Source: Anolis carolinensis
Taxonomy: Eukaryota
NCBI RefSeq assembly: GCF_035594765.1
Contig: NC_085846.1
Span: forward strand, 12,201,190-12,265,189
Direction: 5' to 3'
Length of the DNA stretch: 64,000 bases
The notes under the pieces are model-generated. The model was not told the DNA's origin and ran no database searches. It saw only the letters and a program-made list of their open reading frames with translations. Below, one piece after another: positions 3,973 to 14,637 of this stretch (positions are counted from its first letter, which is position 1; every line of letters begins with the position of its first letter). The position numbers and the translations under genes are program-made.

Positions 3973-4243
3973 ATGGCCTTTGAGACAATTCGGAGGGAGC
4001 GTGAAAATCTCATCGCGTTCCTTGAAAGGGCACCTGGTCTCATCTTGGACGATGCAGCCTCCCAAGGCTTTATCTCAGAGACAGATTACAATGATTTGGA
4101 TAAGCTTCAGAGCTCCAATGAGAAGATGCGCAAACTCTTGGTCAAGATCCAACTCAAGGGCGAAGAGATTTGCCATCGGTTTCTAGAAGGCATACGGAGT
4201 ATCTTCCCAGACCTGCCTGCTGCCTTATGGCCTCCAGCAAGTG
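3973..4243 (+). CDS. CARD-domain exon (CARD6-like), 90 codons
   Basis: MAFETIRRERENLIAFLERAPGLILDDAASQGFISETDYNDLDKLQSSNEKMRKLLVKIQLKGEEICHRFLEGIRSIFP follows the mammalian CARD6 CARD as I recall it (IIERERKKLL...ISEEEY...RKLLILVQKKGEATCQHFL). Acceptor tag at 3945-3946, donor gtgagt at 4244. Confidence 0.85.
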
Positions 4244-5273
4244 GTGAGTTGATGTTTGGTAGGATTTCCAGTTTCACCAGTCATATAATCATAGGGCCAT
4301 CCAGTCCAACCCCATTTGCCATGAAGGAACTCACAATCAAAGCACTCTCAGGGATGCAGGTTCTGCTCCACATCTTCCTTCTGACACCTCTCAAAAGAAA
4401 GACAGACAGAGCTCTCTTACAGTGTAAAGCAACAAAGAGACGTATGGAGGGAGTATTTAAACCAGCTTTCCTCTGATTTCGGCAGGGATACATCAATTTT
4501 ATAGAACGAATACACATTGACATCACTTTTACTGCCATGGCTCAGTGCTCTGGAATCCCAGGACTTGTCATTTGGGGGGGCGGGGGGGGGCGGAGCACAA
4601 GGACTCTTTCAAAATACAGCTGCCATGATTCCACGGTATTGAGCCATGGCAGTTAAAGTGGTGTCAAACTGCATTAATTCTACAGTGTAGATTCATCCTG
4701 AGTATCCTCCTGCACTCTGTCCACCTCCCTCCACTAGTGAGCAGCAGAAATGGAAGTCCCTCTTGGAGCCATCTTGCGTCTGGGAAGAACACAAAACTGC
4801 AAACAGAGTATTAACAATCCCACCTGCTTGGTGTAGGATCTTGGTTACAAGGTTCCATACTTTTTGCAATGTTTTCATCGAACTTCTGGGTTATGAAGTT
4901 GTCAAATAACTCCTCCTCAGCTTTTGGAAATGGTTAGAGTTGCTGACTGCAAAGAGCTGTGAGTAAACTAAATTAAGGTGATAATAATTAATCGTGAATG
5001 CTGCACCCTAAGTGCACAATATTTTATGGGCTTAAAATATGTAACCTTGCAACACACCTAGAGGTGTCAGCCACTATTGCCCCCATTTTACAATTGAATT
5101 ATCTTAGGTTGAGAAATGGTGACTTCATGGCACCTGTTGAGTTCAGAGCTTAGGTGTGGTAAAGGCTATAAATGAGCCAGGTGCCAGTCACAGAACTTCC
5201 TTTGAGTATCATCTAAGAGAATAAGATGGAAGAAAATGTATAAATTTCTCAATTAGCAGAAAAGGGCACTGAG

Positions 5274-5328
<55 letters not shown>

Positions 5329-11300: not shown

Positions 11301-14300
11301 TGACCTTACTAACGGCATAACAAAATTTATTAATGGACTCCAGCATCTTTGCCCAACAGAGAAGCATTTCTTTCTGAAATGGATGAAATTCAACTTAGAT
11401 CGTGTTGCAAGGAAAAACCTCTTAATATTGAAGGAAGAGTATAAAGAGAAATGCCGCACCACAGGTAATGACACAGAGCAATTAAAACAGCTGGACAAAT
11501 TAATTTCTATCAGTTCCTTAGGGGTGGAACACTTCATGCGTGAGCTGGGGCAGTTTTATGAAGCAGAATACATGATGGTGAAAGAAGGTAAGAAGACACA
11601 GGACCAAAGGCAATTTGTGCAACTGCCAGCGATAGCTGCTGACTTGATGCTGGAAGGATTTCCAATGGAGCTGATTGATGGAGATGCATCTAACATCCCG
11701 CTGCAGTGGGTCACTGATGTTCTGACTGAGCTCCATAAAAAGCTAGGGGGCAGATCTAGGATGCAAATTCTAACTGTTCTTGGTGTGCAAAGCACTGGCA
11801 AATCTACCCTTCTCAATACCATGTTTGGACTGCAGTTTGCGGTCAGCAGTGGTCGATGTACTCGGGGAGCGTTCATGACACTCCTTAGAGTCTCGGAGAA
11901 TCTGCAGCAGGAAATCGGTTGTGATTTTGTCTTAGTAATAGACACAGAAGGTTTGAAAGCCCCTGAATTGGCTAAGCTGGAGGACAGTTATGAGCATGAC
12001 AATGAGTTGGCGACCTTGGTTATTGGACTCAGTGATATCACCATTGTTAACCTGGCCATGGAAAATGCCACCGAAATGAAGGACATCTTGCAAATTGTGG
12101 TCCATGCATTTTTGCGGATGGAGAACATTGGCCACAAACCCAACTGTCAGTTTGTGCATCAGAACGTCAGTGACGTTTCCGCGCATGATCAAAACATGAG
12201 GGATAGAAAACACCTCCTTGAACAGCTGAATGAAATGACCACAGCTGCAGCCAGAATGGAGAAACGACATGGAGACGTATGTTTTTCTGATATTATGGAC
12301 TACGATCCAGAAAAGGACAACTGGTACATTCCTGGGTTGTGGCATGGTGTCCCACCCATGGCTCCAGTGAACCTTGGATACAGTGAAAGTGTGTCAGAAT
12401 TGAAAAGGTATTTATTTGACTTCATGAGGACTAGCTCACAAAATAGATCTTCTAAAGACATCCCTCAGTTTGCTGAATGGATAAAAAGCCTATGGAATGC
12501 TGTAAAACATGAAAATTTTATTTTCAGCTTCCGTAACAGTCTTGTGGCCGATGCATATAACCAGCTCTCAATGAAATATTCAGAATGGGAGTGGGATTTC
12601 TGGAAAGAGATATATTGCTGGGTGTCTAAAGCTGAGACTTCAATTCAGAATCGTTCCCTAGAAGAACTCAAAGATGTTGTCTTAGATAAAATAATACTTG
12701 AGGGTTATCACAAATTGGATGCTGGAGAGCAAGAAATGTTGCAGCGCATACAGAGCTATTTTGAGAGTGGTGGAGAACATTTGCACCTCATAGAAAAGTA
12801 TAAGGAAGACTTTGTTAGAAGCGCAAAATTCCTTCGCAACCACCTGGAGAGCTATTTAGTTAACAAGTGTCAGGAGACTATTCTGATTTGTAAAGGGCAA
12901 GGCAAGATAGACAATCTGCAAGCTAAGTATTTTAAAACCATGGAAGGGAAGGTGAACAAACTCCTAGAAGAATGCAAGGAAAGAAAATGCAAACTGAATT
13001 CCAAGAAACTAAAACGAGAGTTTGAGAAAATGTGGAAAGAAACATTGGCAGAGTTGCCCTCTACTATCTTAACTCTCCGGCAAATTGACGTTGATGTGTT
13101 CCATCAGCTCAGGAAAGATTTAGAGAGTCGGGGTAGCTTGGCAAATCAGATCTTGCAGGAGTTAACCTGCACTTCAGAACTTGGTAAGAAACAATTTATC
13201 ATAAAATTCAAGCACCTAGAAATGACATTCTTTAAAAAAATGAAAGAATTCTTCTTCAAAGAATGTCTAGTTGAACTTGAGATTGCTACCATGTCTCTAA
13301 TTGAAAAGTGCAGAAACTATGTTATGAAGAAAGTCAATCTGAAAGGGGACTATGTTGAAACATACTGTCGTGAATTGTTGTGGATGATTAATCAGGAACT
13401 TCAAGAGAAATATTTTCAGAAACTTTATTTTACCATTAACTTTGAGGTAGAGGTGAAATATCACATTCTGCAAGAGGCAGCTGTTTCTTTTCAGGGGATG
13501 CACAATGCCTTCTACAAGGCTAATAATCCCCGTCAGCGATTAGAAAACCTGAAACCTCACTATTTTTCCGTCTTCAAAGACCTTTACAATGAGAAAGATG
13601 CTTGCCAGAAGAGAGCCATGAATTTTTGTGATGTGTGTTTAAAGCCAGCTTTGGTGGACTACCTCTACAAGAGACTTGGCATAGACATAGTTGATAACTT
13701 TCTCAGCAGTGCGCAATCCATTCAGTATGGGAGTCGGAGCTTCTTTCAGTTCATGGTGCAGAAGAAATTGCTGGAAGATGAAAATTTTGATGAATATGTG
13801 AAGTACATAAGTGATTATAAGGAGTTTGTCAAATCTTGGATAGAGGCACACTTGGTGGACCACTATGGGGAAAGCCAAGATTTGGCCGCTTTGGAAAAAG
13901 AAATCCTATCTGCTGTGATAAAGGAAGTCAAAGTGGCCCTGGAGAGCTCTGCAGAAGAAACAGTGACTTTATCTGAATTTCTGGAATGTTTCTGCCAAGA
14001 GATGAGTGAAGAGCTTGTGATTTCCAAGGAGTCTCTGGATATTATCCTGTTCAACAATACTTCCAAAGTTCGCTCTTTCTCAGCTGATGTCCAGGTCTGT
14101 ATCTCCGAAGTAATGGAAAGAATCCTTGCAGATCAATCTAAATTGAATGTTGACATGATACTTCAAGAGGTTCCATTCAAGCCCCAGGAAGAAATCTTCA
14201 AGCGTGTCTTTGGCTGTGGAAAACAGTGCCCCTTCTGCAAAGTCCCTTGTGAAGCTGGGGGTGGAAATCACCAGGAACATTTTGCCTCGATCCATCGACC

Positions 14301-14637
14301 TCAAGGATTAGGGAGGTATAGATGTAATGAAAGCAAGGAACTTGTATATTCCTTATGCTCCTCAGATGTCACTTCAGATACTGATTTTATAAACATGGAC
14401 ACGGGTTGGGAACGTCATCCCTATAAGGAATATCGCCAGTACTATCCTGACTGGCGCATACAGCCTGATGCTAGCATTGCAGCTTCAGATTACTGGAAGT
14501 TTATATTCAACAAGTACAACCAGAAGTTTGCTGAAGAATATGATGCTCTCCCCGCTGTTCTCCCTGCAGATTGGAAAAGAATCACCAAGCAGCAAGCACT
14601 GGAAAGCATCCAAGAAGCCTTTAACATGAAAGAATGA
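3973..14637 (+). CDS. CARD-containing very large inducible GTPase (VLIG/GVIN1/URGCP family, CARD6-like N-terminus), spliced gene; predicted CDS join(3973..4243,7551..7664,9679..9738,9941..14637), ~1713 aa
   Basis: All junctions are GT-AG and phase 1 (G|gtgagt after 4243; cag|AT 7551..GAAG|gtatgc 7664; tag|AA 9679..GAAG|gtaagg 9738; ccag|GC 9941). Summed length is 5142 nt = 1714 codons with no internal stop. CARD in the first coding exon, P-loop GTPase in the last. The two small linker exons are less certain. Confidence 0.8.
5275..5327. repeat. (AAT)n microsatellite
   Basis: Seen directly. Confidence 0.95.
6641..6779. mobile_element. PIF/Harbinger-like MITE (related copies ~674-819, 1968-2117, 6000-6155, 30550-30690)
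   Basis: TIR GGGCCCTTCCACACAG / CTGTGGAAGGGGCC with TTA on both sides. Confidence 0.65.
8635..9534. mobile_element. Non-autonomous hAT-type DNA transposon
   Basis: 8-bp direct repeat CCTCTGGG at 8627-8634 and 9535-9542; CAG...CTG termini; GC-rich internal repeats. Confidence 0.7.
9941..14637 (+). CDS. Large terminal exon: VLIG/URG4-type GTPase
   Basis: Part of the 1578-aa ORF. G1 GVQSTGKS at 11782-11805, G2 RCTRG, G3 DTEG at 11941-11952, family motifs LMLEGFPMELIDGDASNIP and HDNELATLVIGLSD, C-terminal GCGKQCPFCKVPC..H..H motif. A single giant exon is typical of the family. Confidence 0.93.

Follow-up and report, generated by a model that had tools for sequence, protein, structure and literature searches.

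The window, a stretch of 64,000 nucleotides of the Anolis carolinensis genome, contains a locus in which assembled contigs, splice sites, and domain searches reveal one gene with one mRNA, joining a CARD exon to an intact VLIG-type GTPase. The gene is expressed and selectively constrained, and its four coding exons encode about 1,721 residues. Overall, we consider that the locus is best explained (probability about 0.6) as a constrained CARD-VLIG gene whose GTPase assembly would cluster CARDs and thereby couple detection to signalling.

Structure and conservation of the gene

Coding exon 1 (3973–4243, plus strand, as are all exons and domains below) contains the start codon and the CARD in 90 codons plus one base and ends in phase 1; it is defined by the Pfam CARD match, an AlphaFold2 model, contigs of four runs, and dN/dS. 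Exon 2 (7527–7664, 138 nt) encodes a Ser/Pro/Asn-rich linker, the translation of which is free of stop codons and matches the linker of the A. sagrei orthologue P0001, including ACSPTECS. Exon 3 (9679–9738, 60 nt) was recognized from its two joints and its translation, and encodes the acidic linker DGSNTEELEVDMMEEDIPE. The entire VLIG body (URGCP_N, URGCP, GTPase, GVIN1, and GVIN1_C) and the stop codon lie in exon 4 (9941–14637), an open frame of 1,564 codons ending with the stop at 14635–14637 and supported by Pfam matches and the orthologue alignment. The protein length of 1,721 codons is the sum from the exon coordinates. The donors were read directly from the sequence (G|GTGAGT after 4243, AAG|GTATGC after 7664, and AAG|GTAAGG after 9738), the acceptor AG of exon 4 is located at 9939–9940, and all exon junctions are in phase 1.

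The RNA evidence consists of assembled contigs from four runs with transcriptome-sized contig sets (X1, X5, X6, and X7, from four studies), which we took to be RNA since their contigs carry intron-skipping GT..AG joints. Each run provided a contig with the joints 4243>7527, 7664>9679, and 9738>9941, and a single X1 contig of 5,918 nt spans the CARD exon into exon 4. These contigs and the consensus splice sites bear out the original prediction that the CARD exon is joined in frame to the VLIG exon through two phase-1 linker exons. Two of the junctions it proposed (7664/9679 and 9738/9941) were correctly placed, but the first, 4243/7551, was wrong; the acceptor of exon 2 is the AG at 7525–7526, and the exon is thus 24 nt longer, in frame, with eight additional residues that are also present in the RefSeq orthologue P0001. 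Downstream of the stop codon, a probable 3′ UTR with AATAAA at 15148–15153 extends over 14638–15167, as judged from the sequence and the length of the X1 contig, which would end at about 15167, at this AATAAA, if it is colinear past 10049. The contigs cannot give isoform ratios, and a CARD-less isoform may accompany the full transcript. Translation from an in-frame ATG at 9901, within intron 3, could yield a protein that lacks the CARD.

The gene is located just upstream of VKORC1, and the A. sagrei orthologue also lies beside VKORC1. P0001 is 91% identical to exon 4 at 100% coverage, and P0001 and P0002 together show 87–91% identity across 100% of exon 4. The orthologue models share the structure of the anole gene, and P0001 also its exon content. 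RefSeq labels the orthologues as "interferon-induced very large GTPase 1(-like)". Against A. sagrei, dN/dS is 0.205 for the CARD exon and 0.236 for exon 4 overall (URGCP 0.243, GTPase 0.162, and C-terminal region 0.247), so that the CARD and the GTPase are both under purifying selection at a dN/dS of about 0.2; the exon 2 linker, at 0.86, is weakly constrained.

It is highly improbable that the CARD and GTPase exons belong to separate genes or that the locus is a decaying pseudogene. The gap of 5.7 kb with repeats between the CARD exon and exon 4 would fit such an artefact, as would the ATG at 9901 and the predicted orthologues of some species (P0007 and P0012), which lack a CARD. However, all three joints were found in the four independent runs, every domain has a dN/dS near 0.2, no stop interrupts the 1,721 codons, and the orthologues have the same structure. 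The contigs joining the CARD exon to exon 4 contradict the separate-genes explanation.

Upstream of the gene, a pattern search found candidate interferon-response elements, GAAAAAGAAACT on the minus strand (2644–2655) and GAAAGTGAAAG (2687–2697). The pattern occurs three times in the window, where 0.61 occurrences would be expected, and 2 of 100 shuffles reached three. Where the upstream sequence aligns with that of A. sagrei, conservation is highest in the 2644–2697 block, which lies about 1.3 kb before the ATG. The ISRE-like pair may lie outside the promoter, and we regard it as only a hint of a promoter role and of induction by interferon.

Predicted structures of the CARD and the GTPase body

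An HMM search, which the original prediction had proposed as a check, placed both the CARD and the VLIG G domain above their cut-offs. The CARD at 3973–4242 scored 36.8 bits with Pfam CARD (cut-off 23.9), and its AlphaFold2 model is a six-helix bundle with a pLDDT of 95. In structure comparison, the model gave TM scores of 0.73–0.87 to the CARDs of ARC, NOD1, and RIPK2. The best fold match is the CARD of ARC/NOL3 (4uz0; TM 0.79–0.87, rmsd 1.1 Å, 35% identity), which also ranks first among solved CARDs in sequence similarity (E 1.2e-9), followed by RIPK2 and NOD1. The structure of the CARD from a zebrafish "GBP-NLRP1 like protein" has been solved as well (PDB 4irl), so that at least one other interferon-type GTPase is known to carry this domain. 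When full-length VLIGs are set aside, the protein that best matches the anole CARD over its full length is wombat CARD6 (90.5 bits, 41% identity). Reptile NOL3 CARDs are nearly as close, with scores of about 80 bits against the orthogroup profile, and turtle NOL3 is 39% identical. In the CARD tree, the CARD6, NOL3, and VLIG groups are not separated, and reptile NOL3 falls within the VLIG CARD radiation with weak support. The earlier label "CARD6-type" is thus too narrow.

The resemblance to NOL3 bears on the direction of signalling. ARC, a protein of about 200–300 residues with a CARD and an acidic tail and, unlike the anole protein, no URGCP or GTPase part, is known as an inhibitor and not as a nucleator. 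The anole CARD could likewise be a brake or decoy that sequesters or blocks CARD or other death-fold partners, with GTPase assembly locally damping NF-kB or caspase activation. The rank of ARC/NOL3 as the closest solved CARD, the position and identity of the reptile NOL3 CARDs, and some reports that claim a blocking role for CARD6 are consistent with this explanation. On the other hand, CARD sequence similarity does not predict activator or inhibitor, the next best matches are the signalling CARDs of RIPK2 and NOD1, and the tandem CARDs of some paralogues suit multivalent nucleation at least as well. We consider a brake unlikely.

In exon 4, the URGCP domain (10216–11112, exon-4 residues 92–390), which scored 391.3 bits with PF25496 (cut-off 27), lies N-terminal to the G domain and is the part in common with mammalian CARD6. 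The VLIG-type GTPase domain (11194–12384, residues 418–814) matched URGCP_GTPase (PF25683; cut-off 55) with 689.2 bits and covered the whole 396-position profile. As originally predicted, its G1, G2, and G3 motifs are intact. Among 241 aligned family G domains, each residue of the P-loop GVQSTGKS (11782–11805, lysine codon 11800–11802) is 94–100% conserved and DTEG of G3 (11941–11952) 96–100%, and switch I, GRCTRG, upstream of G3, also matches the family majority at the conserved columns (94–100% across the motifs). The AlphaFold2 model of the G domain has a pLDDT of 76.6, and its top Foldseek matches are GBP5, atlastin-3, GBP2, GBP1, and Sey1p, at a probability of 1.0 but with otherwise modest scores (E about 1e-5 to 1e-6, TM 0.34–0.47). 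Pfam RHD3_GTPase reached 37.5 bits on this domain, under its cut-off of 42.4. The G domain, with an intact P-loop, switch I, and DxxG, is predicted to belong to the dynamin superfamily and is probably of the GBP/atlastin/Sey1 kind, modest as the fold matches are.

The remainder of exon 4 (12385–14634) encodes a helical C-terminus, in which a cluster rich in Cys and His lies close to the end. GVIN1 (PF25974) and GVIN1_C (PF26772) were assigned to it through the precomputed Pfam annotation of P0001 and P0002, and the full C-terminus anticipated for the VLIG exon is present, aligning over 100% of its length to these orthologues. The anole protein has the URGCP, URGCP_GTPase, GVIN1, and GVIN1_C domains in common with GVIN1/VLIG-1, whereas it is shorter and begins with a CARD; mammalian GVIN1 is not known to have one. 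It also contains the two Pfam families named after URGCP (URGCP and URGCP_GTPase), but mammalian URGCP, a protein of about 931 residues, is not known to have a CARD or an extended C-terminal part of this kind.

CARD-bearing VLIGs and a possible origin of CARD6

The anole gene is a member of the vertebrate VLIG/GVIN family and falls in a group found across reptiles (squamates, turtles, and alligator), the proteins of which begin with one CARD at residue 1. The survey of CARD+VLIG architectures suggested with the original prediction found them from sharks through amphibians to reptiles. RefSeq and UniProt already hold dozens of predicted CARD+VLIG proteins, among them the A. sagrei orthologue; they come from lizards, turtles, crocodilians, tuatara, amphibians, and sharks, and the architecture has thus been sighted before. 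In the literature, we found no paper that describes CARD+VLIG proteins. Protein searches recovered them in frogs and sharks as well, and by these sequences CARD-bearing VLIGs reach back to sharks. In some reptile paralogues, two or three CARDs stand in tandem, and other VLIGs of turtles and frogs carry N-terminal PYD, Ig, or RING/B-box modules in place of the CARD. Many reptile paralogues have been automatically named "URGCP-like".

Mammalian CARD6 consists of a CARD, URGCP_N, and URGCP, and has no GTPase domain. It follows the same order as the anole protein (CARD, acidic linker, URGCP_N, and URGCP), and the CARDs are 41% and the URGCP regions 42% identical; it differs in lacking the GTPase and C-terminal domains and in its locus. 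Residues 311–666 of wombat CARD6 align with exon-4 residues 37–386 at 42% identity over 361 residues, and past residue 666 of 1,009, this alignment showed no similarity to the anole protein. In the URGCP_N/URGCP tree, CARD6 groups with sauropsid VLIGs, and the amphibian, fish, and shark ones lie outside (UFBoot 99 / SH-aLRT 83). CARD6 sits on a very long branch. The split of CARD6 from all sauropsid VLIGs has a support of only 58/17, in a tree without mammalian URGCP and GVIN1. The URGCP region places CARD6 inside the amniote VLIG clade, whereas the CARD tree, one of the phylogenies that had been proposed, does not separate the groups.

The anole gene was predicted to keep the architecture from which CARD6 could derive. 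The grouping within the amniote VLIG clade (99/83) agrees with this, but the two genes are not orthologues in a 1:1 or a positional sense: VKORC1 is the neighbour of the gene in both the anole and A. sagrei, RPL37 (the Ribosomal_L37e gene) is that of wombat CARD6, and the split support is only 58/17. Nor is it a CARD6 by architecture, since its full GTPase and C-terminus are both missing from CARD6. Since sharks already have CARD+VLIG proteins, the simplest reading is that CARD6 may be a truncated derivative of a CARD+VLIG ancestor.

A possible link from GTPase assembly to CARD signalling

Human GVIN1 coats cytosolic Burkholderia and forms a coatomer on the bacteria, and this coat is the sole demonstrated function in the VLIG family (bioRxiv 10.1101/2025.03.24.645074). 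By analogy with human GVIN1 and the GBPs, the anole gene probably encodes a defence GTPase that is induced by interferon and acts cell-autonomously. Nucleotide-driven assembly, the working principle suggested by GVIN1, would proceed as GTP-dependent self-assembly on a target and bring the CARDs together. Once clustered, the CARDs could bind the CARD of a partner through homotypic contacts, which would couple detection to NF-kB or caspase signalling. The analogy with CARD6 points to RIPK2 as a candidate partner, and that with the CARD-bearing GBPs of zebrafish to ASC or a caspase; that CARD clustering nucleates any of them is purely an inference from such analogies.

Among characterised proteins, those of zebrafish (GBP-FIIND-CARD; CARD structure PDB 4irl) come closest to the proposed logic, since they fuse a CARD to an interferon-type GTPase of the dynamin superfamily, and the anole G-domain model has a modest fold similarity to GBP G domains. 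In zebrafish, however, a true GBP provides the GTPase and the CARD follows a FIIND at the C-terminus, whereas the anole CARD is N-terminal and the GTPase is of the VLIG type. The two fusions are independent. CARD6 is reported to bind RIPK2, and reports of its role conflict, as an activator or a dampener of NF-kB; its knockout reportedly causes no defect in NOD signalling.

The CARD might instead serve self-assembly or targeting, through homotypic contacts among CARD-VLIG paralogues or autoinhibition, with a GVIN1-like coat on pathogens as the effector and no CARD signalling downstream. The many reptile CARD-VLIG paralogues, with related CARDs in one to three copies, could hetero-oligomerise, and the only function demonstrated in the family is coat formation by human GVIN1, which is not known to carry a CARD. 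Yet the PYD, Ig, or RING/B-box heads found elsewhere look like interchangeable adaptor or effector heads and not like part of a coat, and RIPK2 binding is reported for CARD6, which has no GTPase. We consider this explanation quite unlikely and favor CARD clustering that leads to signalling.

A broader reading, which is tentative and in our view somewhat doubtful, is that CARD-, PYD-, Ig-, and RING/B-box-headed VLIGs form an overlooked, vertebrate-wide set of GTPase-driven signalling platforms, of which mammals kept only the remnant CARD6. Their build would be NLR-like: the head would be a death-fold or adaptor module, nucleotide turnover at the GTPase engine would drive oligomerisation, and a large region would follow at the C-terminus. 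When a pathogen triggers assembly of the GTPase, CARD or PYD signalling would be nucleated directly.

Of the four families of interferon-inducible GTPases, the giant VLIG/GVIN proteins are the least understood, and it took until 2025 for a first function to be reported, the coat that human GVIN1 forms on Burkholderia (bioRxiv 10.1101/2025.03.24.645074). The anole gene itself adds less, as its orthologues are already in RefSeq and its function is proposed by analogy. A CARD-headed VLIG that is encoded by one mRNA, is under purifying selection at both ends, and is ancient, from sharks to reptiles, nevertheless offers a testable link from GTPase assembly to death-fold signalling. CARD6, a poorly understood mammalian protein, would thereby gain an evolutionary explanation as a VLIG relative without its engine.

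Structure and transcripts of the CARD-VLIG gene

The first exon (3973-4243) encodes a Met-initiated peptide of 90 residues (3973-4242), which matches the Pfam CARD profile at 36.8 bits (cut-off 23.9). In exon 4 (9941-14637), an open frame of 1,564 codons begins at 9943 and reaches the stop codon at 14635-14637. Both its URGCP domain (391 bits) and its URGCP-like GTPase domain (689 bits) are complete, and the P-loop region has additional weak matches to RHD3, dynamin, and MMR_HSR1. The HMM search thus confirms the CARD exon and the intact VLIG exon of the original prediction, and the splice signals that it named are present in the sequence. 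The donors read G/GTGAGT after 4243, AAG/GTATGC after 7664, and AAG/GTAAGG after 9738, the exon-4 acceptor AG (9939-9940) lies behind a pyrimidine-rich tract, and all the joints are in phase 1. The total of 1,721 codons and the residue offsets in the full-length protein were calculated from the exon coordinates. When the window was scanned in six frames, no CARD exon besides this one was found. Upstream of the gene, a candidate 5′ non-coding exon ending at a donor near 2989 was dropped, since its GT is not conserved in Anolis sagrei.

Transcriptome-sized contig sets (41-81 million letters, versus 1.3-1.7 billion in DNA runs of the same organism) were found for 14 runs, each of which has 89-100% of the sampled exon-4 words. 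The RNA nature of the runs is a guess by label, and they are taken as RNA because the introns are cleanly removed. Joints were examined across 4050-10049 in four runs from four different studies, and in all four a contig shows the GT..AG joints 4243 to 7527, 7664 to 9679, and 9738 to 9941, with an intron depth of approximately zero outside repeats. The CARD and GTPase exons, which the original prediction had allowed might prove to be separate units, are therefore joined through all three junctions in every run examined, and it is very improbable that the architecture is an artefact. In run X1, a single contig of 5,918 nt extends from the CARD exon through exons 2 and 3 to the beginning of exon 4. 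An AATAAA signal is located at 15148-15153, and if this contig is colinear, it would end at ~15167, as calculated from its length, ~14 nt past the signal, and would represent the whole mRNA. The parts of the CARD-VLIG gene and their order, integrity, and expression are shown.

Two of the three predicted junctions hold exactly, but the first, predicted as 4243/7551, joins 4243 to 7527 instead. With its acceptor AG at 7525-7526, exon 2 starts at 7527 and is 24 nt longer at its 5′ end than predicted, which adds eight residues in frame. These eight residues also occur in the RefSeq model of the A. sagrei orthologue, whose linker is the same. Alongside the contig-supported transcript, there may be a minor isoform that uses 7551 or one that lacks the CARD. 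In each of the four runs, the summed contig depth was very high and loose ends were numerous in four intronic stretches (4640-4850, 5850-6250, 6450-6850, and 9250-9450), which represent interspersed repeats that are expressed and no exons of the CARD-VLIG gene.

Distribution of the architecture and neighbouring genes

In A. sagrei, exon 4 is matched at 91% identity by a 1,720-aa protein that carries the name "interferon-induced very large GTPase 1-like" and has CARD among its precomputed Pfam domains. PF00619 is present in more than half of the best 120 exon-4 matches, which come from lizards, geckos, skinks, turtles, alligators, tuatara, salamanders, and caecilians. CARD-containing VLIGs of frogs have 2,068-3,554 aa, and a bamboo shark protein of 1,712 aa has a Pfam-confirmed CARD, URGCP, and GTPase arrangement. 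Since CARD and VLIG occur together in reptiles, amphibians, and sharks, the fusion has an old origin and a wide distribution, is represented in public protein sets already, and is no special feature of this window. A novel architecture is thus not supported at the level of databases, but the claim stands within the literature that could be searched: full-text searches found no description of a CARD on a VLIG/GVIN protein and no link between CARD6 and URGCP/VLIG.

A local profile scan places the CARD at residues 1-90 in one set of proteins from squamates, turtles, and alligators, and other paralogues have one, two (database proteins P0028, P0031, P0033, P0053, P0056, P0060, P0069, P0081, P0082, and P0108), or three (P0041 and P0098) tandem CARDs. 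In turtles, lizards, and newts, the GTPase body of numerous VLIG paralogues is preceded by such tandem CARDs, and the first and later copies fall in different clades of the CARD tree. Some VLIGs carry another head in place of the CARD, namely PYD (P0113, P0075, P0323, and P0334), Ig (P0065, P0102, P0103, P0110, P0111, P0301, and P0302), or TRIM-like RING or B-box (P0075, P0383, and P0384). This suggests that the N-terminal head of VLIGs is interchangeable, and some of these PYD-, Ig-, and RING/B-box-headed proteins may be gene-model fusions. Two proteins combine a VLIG-type CARD with unrelated domains (P0128, alligator, KRAB; P0153, Zootoca, GIY-YIG); each of these CARDs has a nearly identical counterpart in a neighbouring VLIG paralogue, and the two proteins are probably chimeric gene models or cases of exon capture.

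Comparison with the A. sagrei locus, where a VKOR-domain gene (PF07884) lies 5.5 kb downstream of the orthologue, together with ORF reading, placed VKORC1 exons at ~18900-19083 and ~21295-21522 on the plus strand, in a G+C-rich stretch; the VLIG stop codon lies about 4.3 kb upstream of these exons. Among 18 larger neighbouring ORFs, Pfam recognized only a second VLIG paralogue and a LINE. The paralogue (54741-56810, plus strand; one open frame of 684 codons) keeps the first ~85 URGCP positions and the last ~480 C-terminal residues, but the remainder of URGCP and the entire GTPase domain are missing, and a CARD exon belonging to it was found nowhere in the window. The LINE (57936-60932, minus strand; reverse-transcriptase PF00078 and endonuclease PF03372 open frames) lies just downstream of this truncated paralogue.

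Relation to CARD6 and NOL3

With the CARD alignment of the orthogroup as profile, 1.84 billion representative proteins were searched exhaustively, which gave 194 matches at E ≤ 0.001. When reptile VLIGs and fragments of them are set aside, wombat CARD6 (90.5 bits) is the highest-scoring full-length protein, and bat CARD6 and turtle and alligator NOL3 (about 67-80 bits) have high scores too. The word-seeded search with the CARD region returned squamate orthologues only; CARD6 and NOL3 were reached by the exhaustive search. The anole CARD is 41% identical to that of wombat CARD6 and 39% to that of turtle NOL3 in pairwise comparison. In the 89-column CARD tree, the CARDs of CARD6, NOL3, and amniote VLIGs are not separated. 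The CARDs of reptile NOL3/ARC (P0141, P0148, P0164, and P0427) nest within those of turtle VLIGs, a placement of weak support (82-88), and because of this nesting, the NOL3, CARD6, and VLIG CARDs may form one CARD subfamily of shared origin.

CARD6 proteins contain CARD and URGCP, together with URGCP_N in the precomputed Pfam annotation, and no GTPase domain. Residues 311-666 of wombat CARD6 align with exon-4 residues 37-386 (42% identity, E = 6e-77), and no alignment to exon 4 was found past residue 666. A search with the URGCP and GTPase piece gave reptile fragments and fish paralogues, and mammalian URGCP (931 aa) and GVIN1 are absent among the 120 matches listed. The maximum-likelihood tree of the shared region (76 rows, 369 columns, shark outgroup, without mammalian URGCP and GVIN1) follows the species tree through sharks, fishes, frogs, other amphibians, and amniotes, and in it both CARD6 sequences group with the full set of 52 sauropsid VLIGs (UFBoot 99 / SH-aLRT 83). 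CARD6 may lie either outside or among the sauropsid lineages (58/17), and its position should be read with caution, since the branch is very long and the composition of bat CARD6 is deviant.

The idea that CARD6 arose by truncation of a CARD-GTPase protein is largely supported by the shared CARD and URGCP, the lack of a GTPase domain, and the 99/83 grouping. The loci differ: wombat CARD6 adjoins an RPL37-type gene, whereas the anole gene and its A. sagrei orthologue adjoin a VKOR-domain gene. In our reading of these sequences, CARD6 is a GTPase-less mammalian descendant of an amniote CARD-VLIG stock, and the anole gene represents the full-length state without being a one-to-one orthologue of CARD6.

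Constraint, predicted folds, and possible signalling

Between the window and the A. sagrei locus (L001), dN/dS is 0.205 for the CARD exon, 0.233 for exon-4 residues 1-91 (linker and part of URGCP_N), 0.243 for the URGCP domain, 0.162 for the GTPase domain, 0.247 for the C-terminus, and 0.86 for linker exon 2 (45 codons), which alone among the regions compared looks near-neutral. The motifs GVQSTGKS, GRCTRG, DTEG, and HQNV are majority residues in columns 94-100% conserved among 241 aligned family G domains.

The AlphaFold2 model of the CARD, based on the orthologue alignment, has six helices (pLDDT 95), and its best PDB match is ARC/NOL3 (TM 0.79-0.87, rmsd 1.1 Å, 35% identity), followed by the CARDs of RIPK2 and NOD1. 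A PDB sequence search with exon 4 found no relative of solved structure. The G-domain model (pLDDT 76.6) matches GBP5, atlastin-3, GBP2, GBP1, and Sey1p best; the matches are modest (E about 1e-5 to 1e-6, TM 0.34-0.47) and would fit a GBP/atlastin-like G domain of the dynamin superfamily.

The anole CARD-VLIG may be interferon-induced, as suggested by its family name and by a pair of candidate ISRE/IRF-like elements at 2644-2697, where the upstream sequence is best conserved between the two anoles. The GVIN1 coatomer on bacteria (bioRxiv 10.1101/2025.03.24.645074) and the GBPs suggest by analogy that the protein would then assemble in a GTP-dependent manner. Assembly would cluster the CARDs, which would recruit a CARD partner, and this signalling model is a reasonable hypothesis. 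A role in self-assembly and nothing further is considered improbable. The explanation that we favour, with a probability of roughly 0.6, combines the gene structure, family membership, and history with this signalling proposal; its activating form, taken on its own, is tentative. ARC, the closest solved CARD, is an inhibitor, and a protein whose CARD serves as a decoy is conceivable, if unlikely. The clustering of CARDs by the anole CARD-VLIG may thus either activate or inhibit signalling.
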